A stretch of 63,427 nucleotides of DNA, the filler included, from Cercozoa sp. M6MM (Eukaryota > Protista > Endomyxa: Ascetosporea), in the NCBI GenBank assembly GCA_040357565.1. It is 6 parts of 6 records of this genome, joined end to end, with 100 filler letters (N's around TTAATTAATTAA, not from the genome) between each part and the next. Parts side by side here need not be neighbours in the genome. Positions count along the whole stretch, not along the records: positions 11,189 to 24,299 come from JBDODJ010000366.1; 5 more parts are not named here. One strand, 5' to 3'. Shown piece by piece: positions 1 to 24,299 of the stretch. Every line of letters begins with the position of its first letter. Within the stretch, counting starts at the first letter, position 1. The position numbers and the translations under genes are program-made. The notes beneath the pieces are model-generated. The model saw only the letters and a list, made by a program, of their open reading frames with translations. It did no database searches and was not told where the DNA came from.

Positions 1-2008
1 GGGGGGGGGGTAAAACACAGCGATACAGCAGCGCCGGCGACAGCAATGTCTTGCCGCAATTGCGATCGAGTCTCTCTCTGTACACAGTGTGGACGGTCCA
101 AATGGACGGTTCAAATGGACGGTCCAAATGGACGGTCCAAATGAACGGTTCAAATGGACGGTCCAAGACAGAGTGGTACCTGATTAAGGGCGCGTTCACG
201 TCGCTCCAGTTCGAGTTCGCGCTGTCGCAATTTCGCTTCTTTCTCGGACACTGCCCGGGTTCAAGAGGGTAGGGGGGTAAAGGGGGGGCAAAACTCGCAG
301 TACATTCGGCAGCGGCGGCCGCAGACAGCCTGACCGTGCCGTACTTTTTCTTGCGTTTCTTCTTCTCCTTCTTCTTGCGAGGCGTCTCCTTGCTGTCCGT
401 CTCTGGGGGGGGGGGGGCAAAGTGAGTAAGGGGTAAGTGAGTAAGGGGTATAGAAGAGAGCTACGGGATCGGAAGCTGCGCAAGGTGGCAGCCGAGGCAG
501 CGGCCTCGACCGTCTGATTGCGCTTGCGTCGCTCCGAGGCCAGACGAGACCTGTGTAGTCAAGGATACAACTCTGCCTGACTGTACTGAGGACAGCAGTA
601 ACAACATCCAACAGAAGCTGTACTCTTTGGCACGCTGGATGGCTTTCGTCCACTCCTTCATCTGTGTGTGTGTATGTGTATGTGTGTGTGTGCACTTTTA
701 ACATTGGACAAACGACACAAGCACAAGGTACAGATGAGATGTTGCGTGCACGGAAACTGTGTGTCTTCTGGTGCACTGTGATGCTCAACTCGAGCTCGCT
801 CTTCTGCTGGCACCAATGCACACATCACACACACACGCACACACGCACACTGCAGTTCTCCCTGTGTGGGACAGTAGCAAGCCAGTTCAGTTCAATCTTA
901 CCGGAGTTACAACAGTGGACGGATCGAGCAGCCAGATGCGGCCCGCCCTAAAAATCACCAACACATGGAGAGTGCACAACTACAGGTACGGCTCCTAAAC
1001 TGGACAAAGGAAAACGCACGGTTTTGAGTCGGTGCGCTCCTTGAGCCAGAACAAAAGATCGCCCTTGAGCACTGTCCAAAAGTCCGAAAATACAGCACAG
1101 GTCACGGGCAAAAATAAAGCACATAACTCACACAGAAAGCGCTTCTTCCAGCCGAACAGTTCCTTTTTGAGCAAGGTGCCGGTCCGTTCAGGTTGCAGGC
1201 CAAGCAGCGTGTTGGTTTTCGGCATGTTGCCGTACTGTCGGGAAAAGAGAGGGCAGTTTTCCCCGCACAGACAAAAGCAGAGCGAGCAAGAGGCCTACCG
1301 GCATGAGAACCGAGGTGCCGCTAGTGGCGGCCAGATCGTCATTGTCGGCCAGAACGCACGTGTTGGAGCGACCGCGGTGCTTCCACTCGGCAGCCTCCGG
1401 GAAGGCGGATTCATCGAGTGAGTCACTCGAGTTACTCGGCGAGTCTGACACACACAGCAGTATTGCCCTGCACAGGTACCGACGCTTGCACACAGCACGT
1501 GTACCTGAGACAACAGAGAAGGCACTCTTCGATCGTGCCGAGCGAGACATGAGTTGCTCGCGCTCCTCCAGAGTCAGGCCCTACAGACACCAGACCACCC
1601 TACCATATAGGTCTGCACACAGGCATAGCATGGTCGATACCGTGATGCTCTGGAGTTCGCGCAGGATCTGCGACTGCGCCGCGCCTGCTAGCACGCCGAA
1701 CTGCTGTCTGCACAAACAGATAGACTGCAACACACACACGCACACGTGTACATCCGAACGGCGAAAGGCTACAAGGCATGCCGGTCCATCGCGATGATGG
1801 CACTGCCATTGACGCTGCGCATCACGAGTGCGTCGACCGCTTCCTCCGGGATGCCTCTAGACCTGCGAACACAGAGCCACATCTGTCTTGTCTGAGTCTC
1901 CCTTTGCCGACTGTGTCTCTCTGAGAGAGAAACGGCAGCAGTGTACCTCAGCAGATCGGCGACTTCGGTTGACGACATCTGCGCCATGCCGGTTACGCTT
2001 AACGTCAT
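1..2008 (-). CDS. SAM + PH domain protein, multi-exon, 3' end runs off the window
   Basis: Spliced exons give a SAM-like segment (MAQMSSTEVADLLR..GIPEEAVDALVMRSVNGSAIIAMD..QILRELQSI), a PH domain (RTGTLLKKELFGWKKRF/VLKGDLLFWLKE..GRIWL..HSFRARN..MKEWTKAIQRA), then a Lys-rich stretch and coiled coil (EAKLRQRELELERRERAL). Confidence 0.7.
91..166. repeat. intronic 13-bp minisatellite (GGACGGT[CT]CAAAT)n, about 6 copies
   Basis: Directly visible tandem array inside an intron of the SAM-PH gene. Confidence 0.9.
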
Positions 2009-2595
2009 GTCAGTTGTGGTCGTGATCACTTAGTCTCCGACGCTGAACTCGCTGCCTTCTTGGCTGTGATCTTGTGATGCCGAACAATCGAAATGCTATC
2101 AGCGATGCGCGTTGGCCAACTCTGTGGGAAGCAAACGCCGCTGATGCAATCACAAGGTTTAACTAACCGCCGCTCGCGCTTGCGTAGCAGTGTGTCCACT
2201 CTTTTGTGAAGCTGCCTGCACACCTAAGTGCGAAGCAATCGCGTGCTAAACGGGCGGCTACACTACCATTTGTCCTGCGCGTACCGTCCAATCGTTCATT
2301 TTCAATCTGATCGTTTTTGATCAAAAGCAACTGATCCGCGTTCTGCTGATAGCATTTTGGGTGCGTTTCGGTCGTAAAGAATACTGGTATTGAATTCGCG
2401 AATTGTCTTCCGTTTGGTTCTAAACACAAAGAAGATCGTCAAACATGTTTTTTTTTAAAGTTGCAAGATGCAAGTGCAAGCGCGTGAACCTGTGCAGCGC
2501 TGTGTTACTGGTTTTAGTTTATGCTAGTAGCCAGGCAGGCCATCAGAACACTGCAACGCTACAACTTGAAGAAATTGCAACTTCGATCGCTTTCA

Positions 2596-5001
<2,406 letters not shown>

Positions 5002-5183
5002 CCGTTTCACCGTTTCAACGTCAAGTTATCGTATACTAACCTAACGTAACGGGAGTCGAGTCGAGTGGGAATACGATGAAAAATCAGTGCACAAGAAAGT
5101 CAGCAGCGGCAGCACACGCCACGAATGCGTTGCACGACGCGTGCCGCTCGTGCGTGTCCAAGTAGGCGCACTGGACCTCCGAG

Positions 5184-6921
5184 TCAGCTATGCAAGGCCA
5201 TGAGATACACTAGTGCACCAGTACGTCCAAAAGTACGCGCATCAGTACGGTGTGAGTGTGTGCAACACAAATGAAGTGTACTGGAGGAGAGTCGGCGGAG
5301 TTGCTGCACGAAGTGGCGTGGTGTGCCGCGTGACTCGGCACCAACGAGACAGAACTGCACGGGACGCTGCGTGCTGACTTGGTGCAAGGGCTGTGCCCAC
5401 CTGTGTCGAAAGAGTTTTTGGTATGTCATAGTTTGTGCCAATTGGACCGAGGCTACCCTTCGACAGTCTCGACGAGAACAGCACCGGCAGCGGCATTCTG
5501 CTCGAGTGCTCGCACAAAGTCGGCAGTGGTACTCTGCAGGACCTGCGTGCCATGTCGCTGCAGTCGCTCGACGAAAGCTGAGTCGACACTGTTGTAAATG
5601 TCATCCACACTGTCAGTGTTGACATGACGGATCGTGTCAACAATCCGCGAGAGCTGTCTGTCGTCTAGTGGACCTACCCATGATGGGATAAATACAACTA
5701 TAGAGTACACAGGCAGAAATACAGCACCTGAACACATGTGTCGATGTCGCCACAACTCGCCTCCGCAGGCACTGCGCACCTTGGCACACGTGCCTTTGAC
5801 GTGCACGTTCACTTCGGTCTTCATGCATCGTTCACTGGCAAAGTCTCCCGTCAACAACTCCCCCCACAAGAATGAAGAAACAAAAGAAGACACGTGTGCA
5901 GCAGCAGAATGGCCGGCAGGGAGAGTGAGCGAGCCATCTGTAGCACAGCGGCCACGTTGGATGCATGCGTCCAGCCCACGCACTAAACATGGGAGAATCA
6001 TGCCTCCCCCAGACAATAGTAGTCTATGGTAGTCACTGACTGTGTACCACTGGTATCACAAGAGGTCTCTTGTCCTCACGCCTCGACTCTAGACTAATAC
6101 TGTGCTGACCGATGACGGAGCGGTGCAGAGCGACACCGGCCACAGCAACGGGTTCCAGGAAGAAACTCCCCGTGTCCTGCCAAATGTCCTTATATATATA
6201 TATACCTACGATATACATATTTATGTAGATATATATAAATGTATGTATATCGTATAGATACAGAAACCCGTTGAACCGACCTCAATCAAACAGATCGGAG
6301 CTTCTGGTGACTCTCGCGAGTGATGCAAATCCTTCCAGTTTCGCGTGTCGACCAGGCCATCTGCAGCACGCTAACTCAGTCCAAACAGTCAGAAGAGAGA
6401 ACAAAAGCACTCCCTACCATGCTGCTGGCACAGTTGTTCGAACTCATCGGGCGTGATGCAGAAGATCGGCATTGTGTTCTGCGGCGGCTGCGCTGGCTGC
6501 GTCACCACGCTCTGCAGCTCGTCCACCGACAGTGACACCTGCGACAGCCCACATTTCACATGCACATCTCCATGCGTATTTATAGAAATAAATGTTTAGT
6601 GTGCTCATGTACCTTCACAAGATCCGTGCGGAAAGAAAAAGTGCCGGCGCCACAAATCAGTCGTCGTCGCTTCTCCGACTCGTGCCAGTAGCTGTGCGGA
6701 TCCGCGCGGATGTGGAGAAACGCTCGTGAGCCAAAATTCAGAGCCGCGCGGACGAGCATCCCGACATGGCGCGCATCCTCTGCAGCGCTAGCCAGGATCG
6801 GCGTGTTCCCTGGGCATACATACACTGTCAAAAATAAAGAAAAAACGTGGGGAAACGACGCACGAAAACGCAGCGAATCGCCGAGTCTTCTGGCCACAAA
6901 GATAGCCGTCTTTGTGTCCAT
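5184..6921 (-). CDS. hypothetical protein, multi-exon
   Basis: Series of GC-rich exon-like blocks flanked by AG/GT, from MDTKTAIFVARRLG to ..VERLQRHGTQVLQSTTADFVRALEQ..; no family recognised; 3' end approximate. Confidence 0.55.
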
Positions 6922-7062
6922 AGACCGTTAAACACAGAATTAAGTCTACTCGAGTGCGCACGCACTCTATTAATGCTGCCTAGAAATCCTTGAAATACGT
7001 TAAATTGAACTGACTGGCGGGAGAGTCCCACGCCTACTGACATTCCCAAGGAGGCTGATGGC

Positions 7063-10000
7063 TTATAAATGCGACATCTCGGCTTGAGGCCAGGCAGGAA
7101 GTTCGCCTTGCGAAGTCAGCTCATGTCCAAACATTCTGTAACAACACCAATACCACAGCACACAGCAAAGTTGTATTCTACTGCAGACAGTTTGAAAGTA
7201 CCCCAGAAGGTCCAGAACAACGCCGTTGGACCAACCGAAGCCGTGTTGCGCTTCGTACTCACCTCCAACACCGTCTATGCGTTGGCAATCCACAGGTTAC
7301 TTCAGCGGCTTGAGTTCAAACTGTAGGGGGCAGAAACTACGCTGTCCCAGGCGCGTTGCGTCCATTTTCTCGTGCATCTGGCCGTCTCTTTTGAAAGCAA
7401 CTGCGATCAACACTCGTACCGATGCAAACAGACGAGGAAACAGAAAGCACAATACCGTGGTTACTTCGAACCCAGCGCGAAGCGAGTGCCAGAGCTACAG
7501 TCAAGTTGGAGAGTAAAGAAAAGTGTAAACACAAGCAGAACGAAAAAGCACCGAACTGACGCGACTTGGGTGTGTCAATTTGCAGTGCTGCTTCTACGAG
7601 CAGGTGCTGTCTGTACACATACATAGGACGCTCAGGAAAATTCGTCCAACAACGCAAGGTACAAGGGAGCCCAGGCATTCGGAAAGTCCCATTGCTGTCC
7701 AGTTTCCTGCAGTCGATCGGTCCAGCGAAAGTAGTGCACGAAAAGGCAGCAACATCAGCTGTACCGTGTTATGGAACAGTGTAGTGGCAACACCAGCTTC
7801 TTGCACCAGTCTCTAAGTTTCAGTTTGCGCAAGTCAAGCCCAACTTTGAGTCACTTTTCAAAAAATAAGCTTCAGTTTTAATTTACCGAAGAAAGCAACT
7901 CGTCCAACACTCGGTCCGGATCGAGATTCTGCACACAAGACAATTGGTCAAAAACCCTTCCAAACCACAAAACCCTTCCGAACCAGGAGTAAAGCACCTC
8001 AGAATGGCACCCGTGCCACAAAGGCAAAAAACTCGCAATCGACGCTGGTCTGTCGATTCGCTTGCCATCCGCGCGGATGTCTTGCCACTGCAATTGATCA
8101 AAACTGAGTAGATTTCGATCCTTGGAGAGCTGGATTACAAATGCGCCATTAAACATGGTTTCAACGGCAGAAACGCGTTCTTTTCGTTTGCGTCGCCAGA
8201 ACGAGGTTTGTGCAGGTGCGACACTACCAGTTTTTTTTAATCAGAGGGAAGGGTTCGAAAAGAGCGAAACCACACATTTGAGAGAACTCGGCGAGAACCT
8301 GTTCGCTTCGACAGAGAAATACTTGCAGTTCTGCAAAGAATCAAACGTGTCCATACAGTACTAAACTACAGCACACCTTACCAACAGGCACCACATCGGC
8401 GGTCTCAATTGTGGCCAGATCGGTTAGGTCCGTATTCCAACTGCACACTCGCACAGTCATAAATTTACTTTCACCACAATCAGGTTTCACCCAACTCTAG
8501 GAAAATACCGGCCCGAAAAGTCCCAACCTGATTCGGCACCCGCCTGCGTATACTGGAGTACAATAACGACACTGTTTGTGTCGTGTAGTACCTGCAGGTG
8601 CATATAGACTCGTTCTTTGTTGTCGCTGTCTAAAGCAGTTTCGACATCTTCTGCGTGCGACTCTGGGCGCGGGTCAAATGTGCCACTGCTCAGCAGTCGA
8701 GGATATCGATGAAACGAGCAACCTGTGAGTGTATACCGAATGCGACCGTAGTGTTGCATCTTGTGTCCTGTAGACAAAAACACACACACACACACAGCGA
8801 TCAAACACACACCCAAGTAGCCTTCATCAATCACCGTTGACATCGATTGTTCTGCCGCCGTTGGCATCACTTGCGTACCTGTTCGGTAGGAAAGATTCCA
8901 AGGGTAGGTCAAGGAAGTAAGGAAAGCCCAAATATAACGAACACTACCAGAACTGCATCTCTTTGACCAGTTGCGGAAATACGGCAGTCACGAATTCTCG
9001 TTTCTGCTGCGTTTCGTCCAAAGCATCGTACACGAGTTTCGCCATCTCACTCAGCAAAGGGGGCTGCGAACGGTTGCTGAGGTAGGTGCGCGCACCATTG
9101 GGCACTGAGGTTTCGCCACAGTTCATTAAATAATCAAGAAACGATGAATGAAAGAAGTTTAAAAACAAAACTACCATAGTCGAAACGATCGACGAAATCG
9201 GCGAGATTCTCGACCAACTGGCGCGCCGCCTCGACTGAGTGAAAGTTCAGTCGCGGGAACAACACGTAAAATGCAGAGTCAGTTAACTGATACCCAGACC
9301 AGAACGAATCAGTCCACGAATGATCCACGTGGTGTCCCTAATTATAGTTCAGTCACGCATACCATAGGAGAGAGGGAGCTAAAAAGCCCAGTGTACCAGT
9401 AGAACAACTCGCGGAAACGTTCGCCAGGCACTGTGATGAATGCGTGTTTCGTCGGCAGCAACGAAAAGCGTGAGGGCATTTCTCTCACCTGAGGCGACAC
9501 CTTGCGAGACAACGTCCGCCTATTTCACGAGAAAGAGAGAGAGGGAGAGTGTTCCTACAGTCTCGCAGTATCAGTGTCAGTACCACAGCGAGTGCAGCTC
9601 TTCGGCGAATCGCTGGTAGCGTACGTCACGAATGGCGGCAACAAAAGCAGTCGGCGGCAGTGCCGTGAATCCCGGCGGAGCTGCAGGCAGCAGTTCAACA
9701 CTCTCGCTAGTGTCCAGGTAGAAGTTGTCCTGTCAGTCACCATCACATACGTAATGTTACACCCTTCCATCCAGTTGATTCAGTTAGAGAACCATACCTC
9801 AACAAAGCCCACGACTTCTTCATTCGACGGTTCGTGGGGCAGCTGTTCGAACGCTCTCAGGACATCTTGCGGCGACTTGCGCAACGGTAAATCCACGAAA
9901 CTGAGTCACATTCCCCCCTGTCATAAACATCAGCATCGGACTGATCCAATGTTTACGTTTTTGAGTCGTTGAACATGCCTGTGTGGTGCACAGCCTCAAG

Positions 10001-10252
10001 GATCGCATTGTTGCAGTGCACAGAACACGAGTCTTCGAGTCGTGGGATTTCCTGCGGCAAGTGAAGAAATAAATTGATCCCAAGCATGAAACAGCTCATC
10101 GATACGATCACTATGTCTTCATCGAGCACGAACTCCGACCTTGAGGACAGCCAGACCACCAGGAGTGAAGGAAGCACCACGAAACACGCGAAAAGCAGCG
10201 CAAACAGCGAGATCTCTCGCTGCAGGCGCAACTTCATCACCGAGTCGAGCAT
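7063..10252 (-). CDS. TREH: trehalase (GH37) with N-terminal signal anchor
   Basis: DSKTFVD, VPGERFRELFYWDT, VPNGARTYLSNRSQPPLL, PRPES, AGAESGWDFSGR, GGEYEAQHGFGWSNGVVL; hydrophobic SLFALLFACFVVLPSLLVVWL near the N-terminus. Confidence 0.95.
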
Positions 10253-10597
10253 TTTACAAATTGTGCGCCACTGCCCAACAGCACGCACAAGATTCGTGAC
10301 GCTTAATATGCAGTGTGTTCGAGTGCCTTTTCTGCGTGATCGCCGCGCGTGCGTGACCCTGGCCTCAGGCGAGTGGTGAAGCGTTTGACTGATTTTGATC
10401 AGTGATTGATGCTGGGTCGTTGCATGTCAAGAGATGGAGTGTTTTCCCTCGTGCAACCAATCACTTCGTTTCGTTAGATCTGCAGTGCGCACAAGTGGGT
10501 TCTTGGATTTAACACCTGTGCAGGGCCGAGCGTTAGTCTGACAACTCTGGGACCCTATCTGGAGTAGCTTTCACTTTCAATCGTGCTGACGCATCGA

Positions 10598-10996
10598 ATG
10601 GGCGTGTGTGCTTCTCGGAGCGAGCATGTCACCGACGGTGATGCTGGCAGGCACTGCGACACTAGTGTTGCCATTTGCACCTACCAAGATGACCATGCTA
10701 ACAAAGACGACGTCGATGTTTCGATGCCAAGCTTCCTTCGCTTTTGTAACATCAGCACACTACATTGCTTCCTGTTTCTCGTATCTAGTCATCGTTTCGA
10801 TGCTGCACCGGTGTAGTGCGAGACAACACAGTGTCCGGCCAGTTTGTGTCGCCTTTCTTTGCTGGTGACACTGACCTTCCGAACCAGGGCAACACGCCGG
10901 TGATTTACGCCGACTGGACTGCCAGTGGTCGGGCTCTGCGCTGCATCGAACGCACCGTTGCTACGTACCAAAGTTACTCGTGTGTGTGTGTGTGTA

Positions 10997-11029
<33 letters not shown>

Positions 11030-11042
11030 GTGTGTGTGTGCA

Positions 11043-11088
<46 letters not shown>
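10598..11088 (+). CDS. class V aminotransferase / cysteine desulfurase-like protein, 5' fragment cut by contig end
   Basis: IYADWTASGRALRCIE motif typical of this PLP-enzyme subfamily; N-terminal MGVCAS (possible myristoylation). Confidence 0.7.
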
Positions 11089-11188
11089 NNNNNNNNNNNN
11101 NNNNNNNNNNNNNNNNNNNNNNNNNNNNNNNNTTAATTAATTAANNNNNNNNNNNNNNNNNNNNNNNNNNNNNNNNNNNNNNNNNNNN
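11089..11188. other. artificial contig spacer (N-TTAATTAATTAA-N)
   Basis: Identical 100-nt spacer with a stop-codon linker; also at 24300-24399, 29447-29546, 47854-47953, 60020-60119. Confidence 0.97.
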
Positions 11189-11236
<48 letters not shown>

Positions 11237-11318
11237 CACACACAACACACACACAACACACACACACACACACAACACACACACACACACACAACACACA
11301 CACACACAGGCAAGGAAA

Positions 11319-14300
11319 CCTCCAGGAAGTCGACACCGTAGTTGTTGTGCTCGTCAATACCCTGTCAACGCAGCAAGTGCATACGAGAACAGAGACAGAA
11401 ACAACACACCGTCGCGATCGTCAGCACGTTCGGGTCGAAAATGATGTCGCACGCTGGCATGCCCACCTGCAATGGGATCAAAACGTACAGGAACAAGAGA
11501 AAAAAACACGTAAGATGAAAGGTACGAGAGGCGACGTGAGAATGCGGAAGGCACGTTGACAGATGCGTACCTGTACGCATCACCCGGCATCGGCATGACG
11601 CAGGCACACTTGGTGCAAACGCACCTTATCGTAGGCAGAGGCAGCCTGGCCTTCCTCATCGAACGCCATCACCACTGCACAAGCACACACGAGACACGTC
11701 CACCCACAGGACAGAACGTAGAACGCGCGTTTGGGACAACCGCACCGACAGCACAGCCAAAGGCGCGGAGACTAAACACAAGACGTGCACAACACAGGCA
11801 CACAATGAACCAATATGAGATGGTACCGACGAGCCTGACGAATAAACTCCTCGACACCGACCTGCGCACGCAGTAAAAAGCAGATACGATACAAAACAAA
11901 CAAGATGGGGGGGGGGACGCGGGAGACCTTGAGCGAGATCGAGTTGACAACGGAACGGCCCTATGATAGCGTTGTTTTCGTTCTTTCAAACAGGCAGGCG
12001 CAGAGCCAGGCACAAGACAGACTAACCTGGAGGCACTTGAGGCCAGCAATGACGACATCAAAGCGCGAGGAGTCCACGACCTAGTCATGGGATAACATTT
12101 CCAGTAGCCAAGAGGAAGGACAGAGGGTACCACAGGAACACGAGCGACGTCGGGTTCCGACATTAGCCTGTGTTGAGCAACATAGTCGCATACACTAATG
12201 AGCAGATTAAGAAAAGGCTACAAGTTCAAGAAACGCGTCATGGCAGACTTGCCGTCTACGAGACCGTCGTCCACCTGTGAAGGGAAAGTGAAGGCTAAGG
12301 GTTCGACGGCCAGGTAATGACAATGAAGGTATACATTGACGTCGAGCATTTGTGCACCAGCATCGATCTGCTTGGCAGCCACTGCCACGGCGTCTTGGAA
12401 GCTGCGCAACGTGGGGTCGCGATAAGCGACACAAGTTGGCAGGCCATATTGAATCTGTACCGACCATCACAGACCATTTTCTTGAAGCGACGACTGCCGG
12501 CAATGTTGCAGCGTTCTGGACACAAAAGCAGCAGTAGACATTGAGAAACTGAGGGTGCCACTGTTGAGCCGACTGATACCACCGATGTTGACAAAGTTCA
12601 GTGTCGGAGTGTGATGCAGCATCTCGAGACCGCTCGTACGCAGGTAGGGATCCACCGCCGTTGGCAGCTCGCGCAGTGCCACACCCTACAGCGCACTCCC
12701 AGAGAACAATACAGCCACGCCATTTCCTTCCTCATCCAAGAGAACGGTACCGAAGCCAGAAGTTTCTTCGCCTTATCAGCCATGGCACCGATGTGCTCGG
12801 GCGAGGTACCACAACACCCACCGAGCATGTTGACACATCGTGCATCCACAAAGGTGCGCACTTCCTGTCAGACACATGCGGTGGAACACACACACACACA
12901 TACACACACACACACACACACACATACACACACATACACACACACGAGATAGTACAATGCTAGGAAGGGCACACCTCAGCAAAGGCAGTTGGCAATTGGT
13001 CGTACTCTCCCATCAGGTTCGGCAGACTGTGGACACATGCATGCACACACACACACCTACGCGGGCAGATCGAATGCTACCCGGCGTTCGGGTACGCGTG
13101 CACATAGCAGTTCGCCAGTGTGGACTGTCCACAGACACACACAATTGGTACGCCAGCACAGAAATGTAGGACTGAGAAGAAGCTACAAGACGTTCGGCGT
13201 AGGGACGCATGTCCTCGGCACCAAGAGCGCAGTTCAAACCGATGCAGAAAGGACGAGAGTGCTACATACAGTCACACACAATCTGTATAACAAGCACAGT
13301 AGCCTGGTATACCATGACAGAGGTCCAGAATGCCTCGATCGTCTGGCCTGACAGCGTGCGACCACTCCTGTCAAAACAAGAATGATGACGATGTGGCGGT
13401 AGGTTTGTCTAAATGCGGTGTGAGGTGTACTTGTCGACGATGGTGCCAGAAATAAACAGCGGCTTGCGCTCACCGCGTTGCTACAACGCAACCTCTCGGA
13501 GTCCGTCAAGAGTGAAAGTAGTTTGGGAACAAAGGAAGTAGGAAACGCACCTCGGCGACGTCGTTGATGGCGAGAAGCGCGGCCTTGGCGTTCAGCGTGT
13601 CGAAGATGGTCTCGACCAGCAGCACATCCGCACCTCCTGCACGGCATTGTAACAACGCGTGGCGTGCATATAGAAGCAGGGCGTACCCTCGTATAGAGCG
13701 TCAACTTGGACCTTGTAGGCCTCATAGGCCTCGTCGAACGTCATGCCGCGAGCACCTACACCCGGAACAGCTACAGCTTCATCAAGGTGATTTTAATGGT
13801 TTGAGTACCAGGGTCCTCGACGGACGGCGAAATCGACAGCGTGCGGTTCATCGGACCAATGCTACCAGCCACCTACGCGACGGCAGCCTCAACTCTAGCG
13901 TCCGCGGAGAACGATGACTAGTGGGTGAAAGCAAATTACCAGGCGACGGTTGCCATCCTCTTGCTCGGCAATGTCACAGGCCTACTCCACAGTGCAGGAT
14001 ACCACAGACAGCAGACAAACAAACGAAAACGGCACCTCACGGGCGACTTTGCAAGCAGCGAGGTTAATCTCCACGGCCTCGTCGTTGCCCATGCCTTAAA
14101 GGTACGCAGACAACACCAGCGCTAAACCCACAAGACAACGGTCAGACGCACAAAGGTGTGTACCATAGTCAGCGAGCGAAATGCACTGCGCGTTGAACGT
14201 GTCCGTTTCGACTGCAAACACACTCACTTCTGTCTGCAGAAGTCTCATCCTCGTTAAGGTGGCATACCCATGTCAGCGCCACCACGCAGGTAGGCCAAGT

Positions 14301-14789
14301 GGATTTCACGAATGATGTCTGGCTTGGTGATCGGAAGCAGATCATTGTTGCCCTTGAGATCACTGTGCAGCCAACAGCGATATTATACGCAGACAACAGA
14401 TAGAATGGTGCGTTGTACGATGGCCAGTCAGCGAAGCGTTCACCACGGTAATCACTCTCCTCAAGCTTGTGGCGCTGAATCATCGTGCCTGCGGGCACAC
14501 TGCAAGTCAACGATGATGGCGGAGACACGAAATCGCAGTACCCATAGCGCCGTCCAAAATGAGCAACCGGTGCGACATAACTGAGTGCAAGTACTCGAAC
14601 ACCTGCCATAGAATTCAACAAGACCAACGCATGTCTTCGACAAAGGACATGTGAGCAAGTGAGTACCTCGCTGTCCACGGGCTGCACCGGGAACAACTTC
14701 GCCAGTTCCTCCAGATCGTCGCACATCGCCTCCGGTACCCATTGATTCGGCTTGGGGCCATCCTTGCCAGTGTTCACAGTCATCTTCAT
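11319..14789 (-). CDS. MTR: cobalamin-dependent methionine synthase (MetH), Hcy-binding and pterin domains; 3' part lost at contig end
   Basis: [128 protein letters not shown]. Confidence 0.97.
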
Positions 14790-15214
14790 TCTCTACAAAG
14801 AAACGTCGATGGTGACTGCTGACCAATCCGATCAAGGACCAACGACTTGGCAAAAAACATCAGGAATTTCGCAAGTTGGGAAGTATGTCAATCAAAATTA
14901 TGCACAAACACGTAAAAGCCAACAAGCATGCGCTTACACATGCCCGTGCGCATACGGAACAAAATAAAACAGAACAGATTTTTCACGCCAGTGGATTTTG
15001 TGATAGTAAATACCCTCTAATTGTGCTAAACCGCGCTAGACTACTAGTAGACCAGCTTTTACTACCTGACAGTTCATTCAACCGGCTCAAAGCGTCCCTG
15101 AGCAGTACATTCCGTGTTTATCGTTTGCATGTTTGGACGCCCTGAGTCAATTTTGTCTTCGCTGTACTACTGTACACTCACAGAGCGTTTTGGAGATATC
15201 TTCTTGTGCGCACC

Positions 15215-16359
15215 ATGATGCAACCATTACGTAGTGTTGCCCGTAGCGTGGGTCGCAGGCATATCCGTCCTCTGAGCGCGCACAGTGACAATCAAGATAT
15301 AAATGAGAAGGAATTGACGCCCCTCAAAGTTGTGGAGCAGCTCGACCAGTTCATTGTGGGCCAATACGATGCGAAAAAGCAACTTGCCATCGCCCTCCGT
15401 GAGCGCTACCGTCGACAGCAGCTGCCGCGTACCCAGCCAGTTTGTTCTGAGGTGTGGTGTTGCACCGTTGTGCGTTTGTAGAGGACTGGCAACGTGAGAT
15501 TCTGCCGAACAACATTTTGATGTCGGGTCCCACGGTACCGTTCTCATGGCACTTGCTTTCACTTATTCGGCTATGCGTTGTGGTGCAGGGTGTTGGCAAA
15601 ACCGAAATTGCCCGTCGTTTGGCTCGTTTGTCTGACGCGCCGTTCACCAAGGTAGCCACTGCTTGTAGCCACTGCTTGGCTATCTCTGTTTTAGTTTATC
15701 GTGTTGACAGACGGAGGCAACACGGTACACTGAAGTAGGTATCGTCGGCACCGACTTGACCCAGGTGCGCTCATTTTTTCAATCTCTGTCTCTTTGTCTG
15801 GTATCTGTACCCCTTAGTCTACATCTTGTCTTGTGTGGCACAGTGCATCACAGATCTGGCTCACGCTGCCAAGCAGCTTGAAATGTACATCTTGTTCCAA
15901 ACTAACGTGCTCTGGCTGTGAAATTTTGACTGTTTTTGCAGCGAGAAAGCACGTCGTCGCCACAAGAAGGCCATTGAAGACATGGTACAGTAGACACGTT
16001 TTGACATTGCTCTCAAAACACTGCACTGAAACTCAGGTGAACCGAGAGCTCGCCGATGCTTTAACGAATGCAATGAACGGTGATTAAGTCGTGTTTCTTT
16101 TTTCGTTGACCTCTTTCATTTCCTCTCAACAGGCACCTCGTCGGTTCAGCGTCGACACATGCTGGAACGCCGTGAATTAGAGGGTACGCATTGGTCCAAT
16201 TCAATGTACCTTCTTATGACAGAGTTTAGACCACATGGTGACATTGGATCCGCCGCGCGTTTCGCCGGCTTTCGCCGGTGGCGCTCCGCCCTCGCAGAAT
16301 GTACCATTTGTCAACGTGTATATATATACATATATGTATATTATATGTATATATATATA

Positions 16360-16454
<95 letters not shown>

Positions 16455-21298: not shown

Positions 21299-22614
21299 AT
21301 GAATCTGTTCTACATTTTTCGGTGCCCGAAAAAGGCGGCACAGAACTTGTGCGACAAACACGTGCGTTGTATTTGTACCTCGCGAACATAACTGCATGTT
21401 GGATGTGAAAGTTTTGTACGTAGGTGGTAAAAATGGTTGTCGAGACAGCTCAGTTACTGTCAATCGCACACCGCGTTCTCGCACAAGAACACCCCGAGTT
21501 GGAACCTGACCAACAGTTTCTGAAGCAGCTCTACAGAGTCTGGCACATCAAACACCCCTCTGCAATATGGGTCCGTCAATCTGCTCCACAGGTAGGTTTT
21601 TAACGGCACTTTATCTCTGTCAGTCGTGTACAACGATATTTTGCTGCACATGCTATAGTACACTTGGGCGTATCGGCACTTTTGTGCCTTACTGGACGAG
21701 TACACGTTGCGGTACGTATGAATACTATTGATGTTCCCATTAGATACGATTTCTTCTAATTTCTGCTGGAGTTCGCAGATATCAAAAGCAGCACGCTTGC
21801 GAACGCTTACGCGCGATTCTTGCGCGGGTAAGGACAATGTGTGTGGATGAAGCTCTCAAATACTGATGCGTTTGATACTTTCGAGGTGTGAATATAGTAC
21901 CTTGTACTGTTCCGCAGGTGCCAGAACCTATCGCAAACGTGACCGCGTGGAGTCCACCTCCCAAAGCAATGCCTGAGCACATCAAGACGCTGCCGCGACT
22001 CACTTCTCTTGCGTAACTTACCTTTCAAAACGAACAACGAACAACACTGTGCGTATGCCTTCACCTGATGTGTTTGATTACTGTATGTTTCATGCGTACA
22101 GTGCATATCGAATGTACTACCGGGAAAAGGCAAAGCATCCTTGGTTTAAGTATGCACGTGGTAGACACCCACCATCGTTTCTGGTAAAGTTGTTGAAGAA
22201 GTTGAAACGCATTCAAGACGTCTCAATAGTCTCTGTGTTTGCAAAAAGGGGTTAAGCCAAACGAAGCTCCGGCAGGTGACAATAGTCACCAGCGATCGCA
22301 AAGCACCGCGAAAGGCAAAAAAGAGAACGAGGCTCAACGAAGACACAGCGGTAGGTCCAGCGAAACCCATAAATGCAACGAAAACCAAGGGTGCAGCGTC
22401 ACTCAAAGGTGCAGCGTCACTCAAGGGTGCAGCGTCACTCAAGGGTGCAGCGTCACCCAAGGTTGCAGCGTCACCCAAGGGTGCAGCGTCACCCAAGGGT
22501 ATAGCGAAAAACAAGCCACAAAAAAAGAGTCACAACAAGGCTCCTCGCGCGACTCAAATGAATCTCCGTCCCCGTAAAAGACGTCGAGTACAGCCTCCAC
22601 ATGTGCCAACGTAA
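21299..22614 (+). CDS. phage/bacterial-type pyrimidine-dimer DNA glycosylase (T4 endonuclease V-like) family protein with H1-like basic tail; 7 exons
   Basis: Exons 21299-21361, 21424-21591, 21659-21711, 21779-21827, 21918-22013, about 22101-22183, about 22249-22614 splice in frame to MNLFYIFRCPKKAAQNLCDKHVVKMVVETAQLLSIAHRVL..LYRVWHIKHPSAIWVRQS..YTWAYRHFCALLDEYTLRYQKQHAC..PPPKAMPEHIK..SLAAYRMYYREKAK..RGRHPPSFL plus a K/R-rich tail. Family assignment is from remembered motif similarity. Confidence 0.85.
22386..22500 (+). repeat. coding 18-bp tandem repeat encoding GAAS[LP]K x6
   Basis: CAAGGGTGCAGCGTCAC[TC] units visible directly. Confidence 0.95.
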
Positions 22615-22833: not shown

Positions 22834-24242
22834 ATGGTGGAGAAACGAACGCGTTCGCGCCAAGATTTTCATGAGCCTACCCAGGCCGCTAAGCGAGGTA
22901 TGTTTCTCACCGTATGCGTTGCGCCTTATATCCGGGGTAAAGGCGAAATGTTTTAAAGGCACGGGCTTCGTGCGTGGCGACGAGGCTGCTCACCCCGACG
23001 ACACGCCAGACATCGGTGTGCTTGTTTTGTCCCGCTGCGTGCCCATTTATTGTGTGTGCTTGGCCAAAACGCCCACAGGTTTTGAGGAGAGCGAGGATGA
23101 GTTCATTGAGGAGCAAATCGTATCAATTGTCGCTTAGTACGCACCTTTTCTTTGCCGGTATTTCCAACTTTCTTGGTAGGTCCAAGCGGGTGAGACGATG
23201 GATGATGAGGACGATGAGAAGCGTCCTGAGCAGGTAACTTTGTTTGTAGACCTCACATTGGACCCCAAACGTATCTCCCTGGCCTGCGCAGACGCAAGTT
23301 TGGATGCCCGAAGTCGCGCCGGTCGGCGAGGACGAAGAGCTTGTGGTCGACAACTCCTACTACAAGTGGTACGTGTGTCCTCTCAAGAGACAGAAGAAAC
23401 ACCAGTGGTGCATATGTTCGTTCTGTAGTCTGCACCGTCTGAACACGGACTGGCCGTCGATGTCGTTCGATATTCTTGCCGATGCAGGTGGCGTTGGCCG
23501 TGCCAGGTATGACTACTTCATGCTTCATCTTCATCGGTAACTGATTTCCAACATGGTGATGTGTTGCACATGCAGATTCCCGCACACGCTGTATCTGATG
23601 AGAGGCACCAGCGGTCCCGCTGGCGGTGGTCGCCACGGCCACAAGCTCGAGGTACAGCATTGTTTCTTCTTTGATGCCCGTGTGTGTCCTAGTTTGTATC
23701 AAGAGCTGCTACAGGCTCTCAAACTGAGTGAGCTGCACAAGACCAAGTACGACGATGGCGCGCCCATGGGTGCCTAAATTCCTTTGCACCCGTTTGTGTG
23801 GATAATTCCCATCACATGGAACAGACGAGGACGAGAGCGATGAGGATGTCGATGGCGACCCGGTTGTACCACGTGCTATCTCACGTGTCGATATGCCTTC
23901 TTAATATGCCTGTGTATATAGGTGCAAAACGTGTCGTGGCGTGTGCCTGCATCGGTCAATCGTGTGCGCGTCATGCCGCAGAAACCTGTACCCACAAAGA
24001 TGCTTGCAGTGATTGAAGGTCTGTTTGTATATATATATATATGTGTGTGTGTGTATGTGCTTAGGGCGGTCCGCTGCGTCATGTGGTCGCATGCTGGCTC
24101 TCCAACGGACGCGTCCAAGTTTACGATGTATTCTTGCGTTTAGCTTTTGTCTCGTGCCGTTGTGTTGTATGTCTATGTCTGTACCAACTTAGGGCACAAC
24201 GCACGTGAGTGCGATGGACCGTCCACCTGCCCAGTACACTGT

Positions 24243-24299
<57 letters not shown>
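22834..24299 (+). CDS. GRWD1: glutamate-rich WD repeat protein 1 (Rrb1), 5' part
   Basis: FEESEDEFIEE, VWMP..EELVVDNSYYKCLHRLNTDWPSMSFDIL, FPHTLYLMRGT, LSELHKTK..DEDESDED, VNRVRVMPQ; cut by spacer. Confidence 0.9.

Follow-up and report, generated by a model that had tools for sequence, protein, structure and literature searches.

A phage-type, T4-endonuclease-V-like domain with a predicted basic C-terminal tail in an intron-bearing protist gene

How a domain at home in phages and bacteria comes to open a eukaryotic gene broken by six introns, and what such a protein might do there, is the question raised by a locus at positions 21299-22614 (+) of the stretch of DNA analysed here. This stretch (hereafter the window; 63,427 nucleotides joined from six parts of the Cercozoa sp. 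M6MM assembly GCA_040357565.1) holds the locus in a 13-kb piece, JBDODJ010000366.1 (11,189-24,299), and an earlier note made from the bare sequence had proposed for it a pyrimidine-dimer-glycosylase-like gene of phage type fused to a histone-H1-like tail. The answer we favour, and regard as moderately probable, is that of a functional protist nuclear gene, a domesticated gene of phage type in which a DNA-repair-like domain is followed by a basic tail.

An intact gene of seven exons

Searches of databases, families, Protein Data Bank (PDB) entries and folds were made exon by exon, or with the protein MES1914494.1 (label P0001) in place of the window protein; the spliced protein itself was compared directly with the retrieved relatives by identity, a family hidden Markov model (HMM), alignment and tree. 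MES1914494.1, hypothetical protein MHM6MM_006557 of Cercozoa sp. M6MM, is the best phmmer match of exon 2 among 1.84 billion representative proteins, and it is 64-67% identical to the window protein over some 180-200 residues, the identity of the latter to anything else being at most about 52%. The two proteins share the same N-terminus, the same end of the domain (PP[AS]FL) and a C-terminal extension that begins similarly and contains a cluster of lysines and arginines (K/R cluster). The organism listed as Cercozoa sp. M6MM, a marine amoeba of the Rhizaria (Apofilosa), now bears the name Lemnamoeba sinaloensis; its genes are reported to contain about 13 introns each, of 82 nt on average, and its genome to be unusually rich in simple-sequence repeats (PMC13746701).

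Re-derived from the sequence, the spliced frame is intact throughout its seven exons and six GT-AG introns, with 876 nt encoding 291 amino acids and one terminal stop, in full agreement with the exon count, the introns and the domain motifs given by the earlier note. Without splicing, the frame ends after 30 codons. When MES1914494.1 is used as a tblastn query, exons 1 to 6 are matched in order and the alignment is gapless at every junction. The introns have a lower GC content (37-42%) than the exons (52.5%), and no sequence is common to the six of them, nor is any shared between them and the rest of the 13-kb piece; hence, nothing points to an introner family.

All features of the gene lie on the plus strand. 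Exon 1 (21299..21361) encodes residues 1-21 from a start codon that is the family's own N-terminus (MNLFY...CDKH), and it matches both positions 1-21 of the PHROG 624 profile (E 1.7e-5) and residues 1-22 of MES1914494.1 (91% identity). The removal of intron 1 (21362..21423; 62 nt, phase 0, 42% GC) rebuilds the family-invariant motif CDKH-VVKM across the junction. Exon 2 (21424..21591, residues 22-77), which matches PHROG 624 positions 23-65 at E 7.4e-12, contributes the invariant K24, M25, E28 and Q31 together with the H.xHP..W block, the Glu28 codon being a GAG at 21442-21444. Beyond intron 2 (21592..21658; 67 nt, phase 0), exon 3 (21659..21711, residues 78 to about 95) is 84% identical to residues 74-92 of MES1914494.1, and intron 3 (21712..21778; 67 nt, phase 2) interrupts an invariant arginine codon (R91 in MES1914494.1 numbering). 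Exon 4 (21779..21827, residues about 95 to 111) and exon 5 (21918..22012, residues 112 to about 143, with the motif PPPKAMP) both have colinear tblastn matches to MES1914494.1 and are separated by intron 4 (21828..21917; 90 nt, phase 0). Across intron 5 (22013..22101; 89 nt, phase 2) the spliced length equals that of MES1914494.1, and exon 6 (22102..22183, residues about 143 to 170; AYRMYY...WFKYARG...PPSFL) brings the conserved domain to its end. Intron 6 (22184..22248; 65 nt, phase 0), whose junction is the least certain of the six, precedes exon 7 (22249..22614), whose 122 predicted residues make up a low-complexity, basic tail and which ends with the stop codon at 22612-22614.

A phage and bacterial family and its eukaryotic pair

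The window protein belongs to the phage and bacterial clade PHROG 624. Exons 1 and 2 match the profile of this clade in order and from its first position, and a tblastn search with exon 2 finds matches in 49 phage records at 43-49% identity. The HMM derived from a 44-sequence family alignment recognises the spliced protein with 193.7 bits over residues 1-175, spanning profile positions 1-164 of 168, and in that alignment the window protein keeps 16 of the 16 invariant columns (N2, F4, K24, M25, E28, Q31, L33, A36, Y54, H58, H61, P62, W66, R91, H96 and Y141 in MES1914494.1 numbering) and 18 of the 22 near-invariant ones. Other members of the clade, such as WMX18611.1 of Aeromonas phage 1233, share the domain end to end, at 40-52% identity and with the same 16 invariants. 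Whereas the window gene has six introns and a 122-residue C-terminal extension, the genes of phages and bacteria in this clade contain no introns and encode single-domain proteins of 150-190 amino acids without a basic tail. The earlier note had assigned the domain to a family typical of phages, giant viruses and bacteria; the phage and bacterial part of this assignment is upheld by the PHROG 624 matches and by the Pfam family PF03013 (Pyr_excise), whose threshold MES1914494.1 passes, while the giant-virus part finds weak backing, the structural matches to giant-virus proteins in BFVD being poor (Catovirus, Foldseek E 0.05; Pithovirus, E 0.97).

Counted at E <= 1e-5 with MES1914494.1 as the query, relatives amount to 4,294 proteins, the nearest non-eukaryotic ones being about 50% identical. 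Genes for them occur at no fewer than 590 viral loci of IMG/VR and, in genomes of bacteria or archaea (e.g. Moraxella, SAR86), at 312 loci, and among the best 120 of the 4,294 proteins MES1914494.1 alone carries a eukaryotic label. The neighbouring clusters in the ESM Atlas are 85-100% Uroviricota, and the best structural matches in BFVD are uncharacterised phage proteins. One close relative (P0104) is found on a T7-like marine phage contig (IMG/VR 3300001589_000253, 186-11687), flanked on one side by ThyX and MazG genes of nucleotide metabolism and on the other by the gene for a single-subunit RNA polymerase, with genes for a gp2.5-like single-stranded-DNA-binding protein and a primase/helicase nearby. 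This context places the clade in the early DNA-metabolism module of T7-like phages.

In a maximum-likelihood tree of 134 sequences, the window protein and MES1914494.1 form a clade with a Shimodaira-Hasegawa-like approximate likelihood-ratio (SH-aLRT) support of 99. The sister of this pair is a metagenomic protein (support 83), and the enclosing clade (support 84) also contains viral contigs and a contig from a bacterial metagenome-assembled genome. Viral and bacterial labels are intermingled throughout the tree, the backbone of which has poor resolution. The phylogeny proposed as a check by the earlier note thus shows the eukaryotic pair nested among viral and bacterial sequences, and it indicates what was probably a single transfer from a phage or a bacterium to a eukaryote, with introns gained later. 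The direction of this transfer is clear, because the donor family, a very large one, consists overwhelmingly of viral or bacterial members and only two eukaryotic copies were found, and all six introns must post-date it, since the donor gene is intron-less. Moreover, the existence of two intact copies at about 65% identity, be they paralogs within one genome or orthologs of related species, points to a long residence under selection. With a second intact eukaryotic copy, and with the pair lying inside a viral and bacterial radiation, the old and domesticated horizontal acquisition put forward in the earlier note is the best reading of these data. The reported co-option of phage lysozyme genes by bivalves (PMC5303276) provides a precedent for a phage-type gene that moved into a eukaryotic genome and was kept as a host gene, albeit in a different protein family, with a different function and in a different host lineage.

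Likeness to T4 endonuclease V and the basic tail

T4 endonuclease V (DenV), an all-helical protein, uses the alpha-amine of Thr2 as its nucleophile and Glu23, in helix 1, as its catalytic glutamate, and its Arg22 and Arg26 contact DNA. Membership of the PHROG 624 clade in the superfamily of this enzyme is well supported. MES1914494.1 scores 38.4 bits against PF03013, for which the cutoff is 23 and T4 DenV itself scores 53.3, and the same family is present in the precomputed annotation of most close relatives. Throughout the domain, from residue 1 to about residue 150, the AlphaFold2 model of MES1914494.1 is confident, with predicted local distance difference test (pLDDT) scores exceeding 90. 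An exhaustive VIA-align comparison of this model with 48,161 PDB representatives yields T4 endonuclease V (1enj_A) as an isolated top match (Z 7.8, rmsd, or root-mean-square deviation, 4.1 Å, with 121 of 137 residues aligned over model residues 1-168), the next match standing at Z 4.6.

T4 endonuclease V (PDB 1ENJ) thus belongs to the same Pfam family and stands out, ahead of all others, as the one clear structural counterpart of the model, and it shares with the PHROG 624 clade a D-x-H motif, an aligned catalytic glutamate and the position of the domain at the N-terminus of the protein. On the other hand, the sequences are only 12-16% identical and the PHROG 624 clade is about 30 residues longer. 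Residues D19, H21 and E28 align with D14, H16 and E23 of T4. Glu28 is invariant in the 44 family members and in the window protein, and it is aligned with T4 Glu23 both by MAFFT and by hhalign (weakly, at E 0.12); the window domain begins at residue 1, and a free N-terminus is present. Both of the features that the earlier note had singled out, a glutamate in the vicinity of residue 23 and a domain at the extreme N-terminus, are therefore borne out. A metagenomic relative of 314 amino acids (P0070) carries two tandem copies of the domain per chain; that the second one has no free N-terminus speaks against an N-terminal amine being indispensable to the mechanism, in this second copy at any rate.

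Among characterised enzymes, the Chlorella virus pyrimidine dimer-specific glycosylase (cv-PDG) is a member of the Pyr_excise family that is active inside a eukaryotic cell, but it differs from the window gene in belonging to the classical T4-like clade and in being encoded by a virus rather than by the host. A fold-based inference of the same kind has been made for its own gene in one phage paper (PMC8265664).

The C-terminal tail agrees with the earlier description of some 120 K/R-rich residues ending in RPRKRRR: its 122 residues have a pI of 12.0 and include 20 lysines, 20 alanines, 12 prolines, 11 arginines and 9 serines, with 31 basic (K+R) against 3 acidic (D+E) residues. The frame is open for about 150 codons, extending well past a tandem repeat on both sides. 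Immediately after the intron 6 junction, LSQTKLRQVT in the window is matched in register at 7 of 10 positions by LSEAKRKQVT in MES1914494.1 (high-scoring segment pair with E 0.013). A first K/R cluster resembling a nuclear localisation signal (NLS), RKAPRKAKKRTR, is read from the sequence at 22297..22332 (+), and MES1914494.1 has a cluster (KRKKKK) at the same distance past the domain. The tandem repeat follows at 22385..22500 (+), with 6.4 copies of an 18-bp unit (Tandem Repeats Finder score 197, 93% matches) that encode GAAS[LP]K units, and the NLS-like cluster RPRKRRR, likewise read from the sequence, lies near the C-terminus at 22567..22587 (+); MES1914494.1 ends in an RLRRSKRL cluster. 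Both K/R clusters may serve in nuclear import. Six units are indeed found in the array, as earlier proposed, albeit with one of them beginning with valine (three GAASLK, followed by GAASPK, VAASPK and GAASPK).

The comparison with histone H1 can be upheld for composition only. Like the C-terminal domain of H1, the tail is very basic, of low complexity and rich in lysine, alanine, proline and serine, with S-P-K motifs, but Pfam detects neither a linker-histone nor any other domain in it, and the winged-helix globular domain of H1 is thus without a counterpart there. Nor does the likeness extend to MES1914494.1, the tail of which is 80 residues long and threonine-rich, with a pI of 9.5 and without the 18-bp repeat. 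In our reading, the tail is a rapidly evolving, disordered extension whose conserved content probably amounts to one or two NLS-like clusters, and its H1-like composition is specific to the window copy and presumably in part a product of repeat expansion. A second open reading frame (ORF) of 112 amino acids, at 22239-22577 (+), overlaps the tail exon in another frame, encodes GCSVTQ repeats and would be reached if an alternative AG at 22228-22229 served as acceptor; in all likelihood the in-frame 18-bp repeat gives rise to it as a by-product.

Competing readings, genomic surroundings and meaning

Under the reading we favour, the host would be a protist, most likely a rhizarian amoeba, that acquired the gene once and horizontally from tailed phages or their bacterial hosts, and in which six spliceosomal introns would have been gained after the transfer. 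The N-terminal 170 or so residues would form a domain with the T4-endonuclease-V fold (Pyr_excise superfamily, PHROG 624), while the disordered tail of some 120 residues, rich in lysine, alanine and proline, would import the protein into the nucleus through its two NLS-like clusters and add non-specific affinity for DNA. There, the domain would bind damaged DNA as a lesion-specific enzyme of the glycosylase/AP (apurinic/apyrimidinic)-lyase type using Glu28. Expression of the gene, nuclear localisation of its product, catalytic activity and choice of substrate are, in this scheme, predictions made from sequence. The UV-repair and chromatin-tethered parts of the earlier proposal appear plausible, tethering to chromatin by the tail being speculative. 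In its most specific form, the proposal is that of a phage pyrimidine-dimer-glycosylase-like enzyme domesticated by a rhizarian as a nuclear, chromatin-associated repair factor, through the addition of an NLS and of an H1-like tail that binds DNA at its C-terminal end; an addition at the other end would have blocked the catalytic N-terminus. We regard this specific form as doubtful.

Several observations weigh against a lesion-cleaving enzyme with a tail for nuclear work, and most of them concern the domain. Literature searches brought up no characterised member of the PHROG 624 clade. Foldseek finds nothing in the PDB for the MES1914494.1 model at E <= 0.001, and its match to cv-PDG is weak (probability 0.77, E 0.56); searches of PDB sequences with exon 2 (phmmer) and with the family HMM do not find T4 endonuclease V. 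Comparison of the family alignment with T4 DenV alone by hhalign gives nothing useful, and one with 20 aligned T4-clade sequences falls short of significance (E 0.12). The match to an endonuclease-V-like family claimed in the earlier note is thus sustained by the Pfam profile and by the exhaustive structural comparison, not by Foldseek. Pfam and NCBIfam return no match for single window exons either; the 81-position PF03013 model spans exons 1 to 4, which explains the Pfam outcome. The T4-clade invariants M1, T2, R3, I4 and N5 (MTRIN) are replaced by MNLF in the window, and Arg22 and Arg26 of T4 correspond to Val27 and the invariant Gln31. With these T4 residues not conserved and the comparison of profiles with the T4 clade not significant, pyrimidine-dimer glycosylase activity is an inference. 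The clade has, in addition, its own set of invariant histidine and tryptophan residues, and its chemistry or substrate may accordingly differ from those of T4. These data lend themselves to a possible alternative, according to which the origin of the gene is the same but the domain is a DNA-binding protein, or an enzyme for some other lesion or substrate, that shares with T4 endonuclease V its fold only, the eukaryotic copy having been co-opted for another DNA-related role. The absence of Thr2/Arg3, Arg22 and Arg26 and the clade's own N2, F4, K24, M25, H58, H61, P62, W66, R91, H96 and Y141 agree with such a role, as does the label of PHROG 624, 'DNA binding protein', a name carried also by many phage records. 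It is opposed by the invariance of the glutamate aligned with T4 Glu23, by a domain that always starts at residue 1, as a free N-terminal amine would require, by the DNA-metabolism genes that surround the gene in phages and by the placement of the clade in Pyr_excise by Pfam.

The remaining objections bear on the tail and on the gene model, the junctions of which are supported by homology. Should intron 6 be retained, the protein would end at a stop codon at 22255, with 196 residues and no tail; with this or with another acceptor, the A-rich minisatellite region downstream would go untranslated. The 18-bp repeat is free of stop codons in all six reading frames, as the overlapping 112-residue ORF illustrates, the region is A-rich (AT skew 0.31), the homology past the junction is short, and MES1914494.1 is itself a gene prediction. 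The GAAS[LP]K array, moreover, is a young minisatellite that forms the core of the tail, and the two eukaryotic copies have little of the tail in common. We nonetheless consider a tail-less protein unlikely, and translation of the tail as modelled quite probable, in view of the match in register after the junction, the equal spacing of the K/R cluster in both proteins, a frame that remains open beyond the repeat on both sides, and a donor (GTAAAG) and an acceptor (AAG) that resemble those of the other five introns. Much less credible still is the notion that the locus is a decaying or silent relic of transfer, or phage or bacterial DNA contaminating the assembly, even if the family is overwhelmingly viral or bacterial. 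Six canonical spliceosomal introns are foreign to phage and bacterial DNA and rule out contamination of the assembly; the same contig bears an HslU-like gene that also has introns; and a relic would hardly be expected to keep an intact spliced frame with every invariant residue of the family, or to have a second intact eukaryotic copy at 64-67% identity. The functional, domesticated nuclear gene thus remains the reading that we prefer.

The first exon of the HslU-like gene, which encodes a subunit of an AAA+ protease, lies at 15206-15478 (+) and matches HslU chains in the PDB (E 1e-8); it begins with an N-terminal extension of about 35 residues that resembles a mitochondrial presequence, and the gene, which is split by introns, continues in an ORF at 15454-15738 with a Walker-A-like stretch. 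On the other side, an apparent gene at 22834-23760 (+), with an ATG at 22834, several short exons and GTA-type donors, follows only about 220 nt past the stop codon, which suggests a compact genome. Dinucleotide arrays are found at 11189-11308 ((AC)62), 12886-12945 ((AC)30), 16319-16453 ((TA)21 adjoining (TG)46) and 24245-24299 ((TG)27), the contig starting and stopping inside (AC)n and (TG)n arrays, and arrays of this kind at contig ends have been reported for the short-read M6MM draft (PMC13746701). Rfam finds nothing on the 13-kb piece. An ORF of 206 amino acids at 14172-14789 (-) has no Pfam match, and its candidate identity as a methionine-synthase exon was dropped after a PDB search gave it no support.

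The domestication of phage genes by eukaryotes has rarely been documented, and the locus is also relevant to intron gain, for the lineage of MES1914494.1 is reported to have its roughly 13 introns per gene without a known source (PMC13746701). The extent of this gain could be read directly from the intron positions of the two copies. If the specific proposal of a nuclear, chromatin-associated repair factor were true, a eukaryote would possess a one-enzyme base-excision route for UV dimers, and the gene would constitute a dated record of six intron gains within about 0.9 kb, in a lineage with unusually many introns. More generally, should the protein cut UV dimers, it would represent a natural counterpart of T4-type glycosylases equipped for nuclear work, and it would open, for the first time, a functional way into a phage clade that numbers its uncharacterised members in the thousands.

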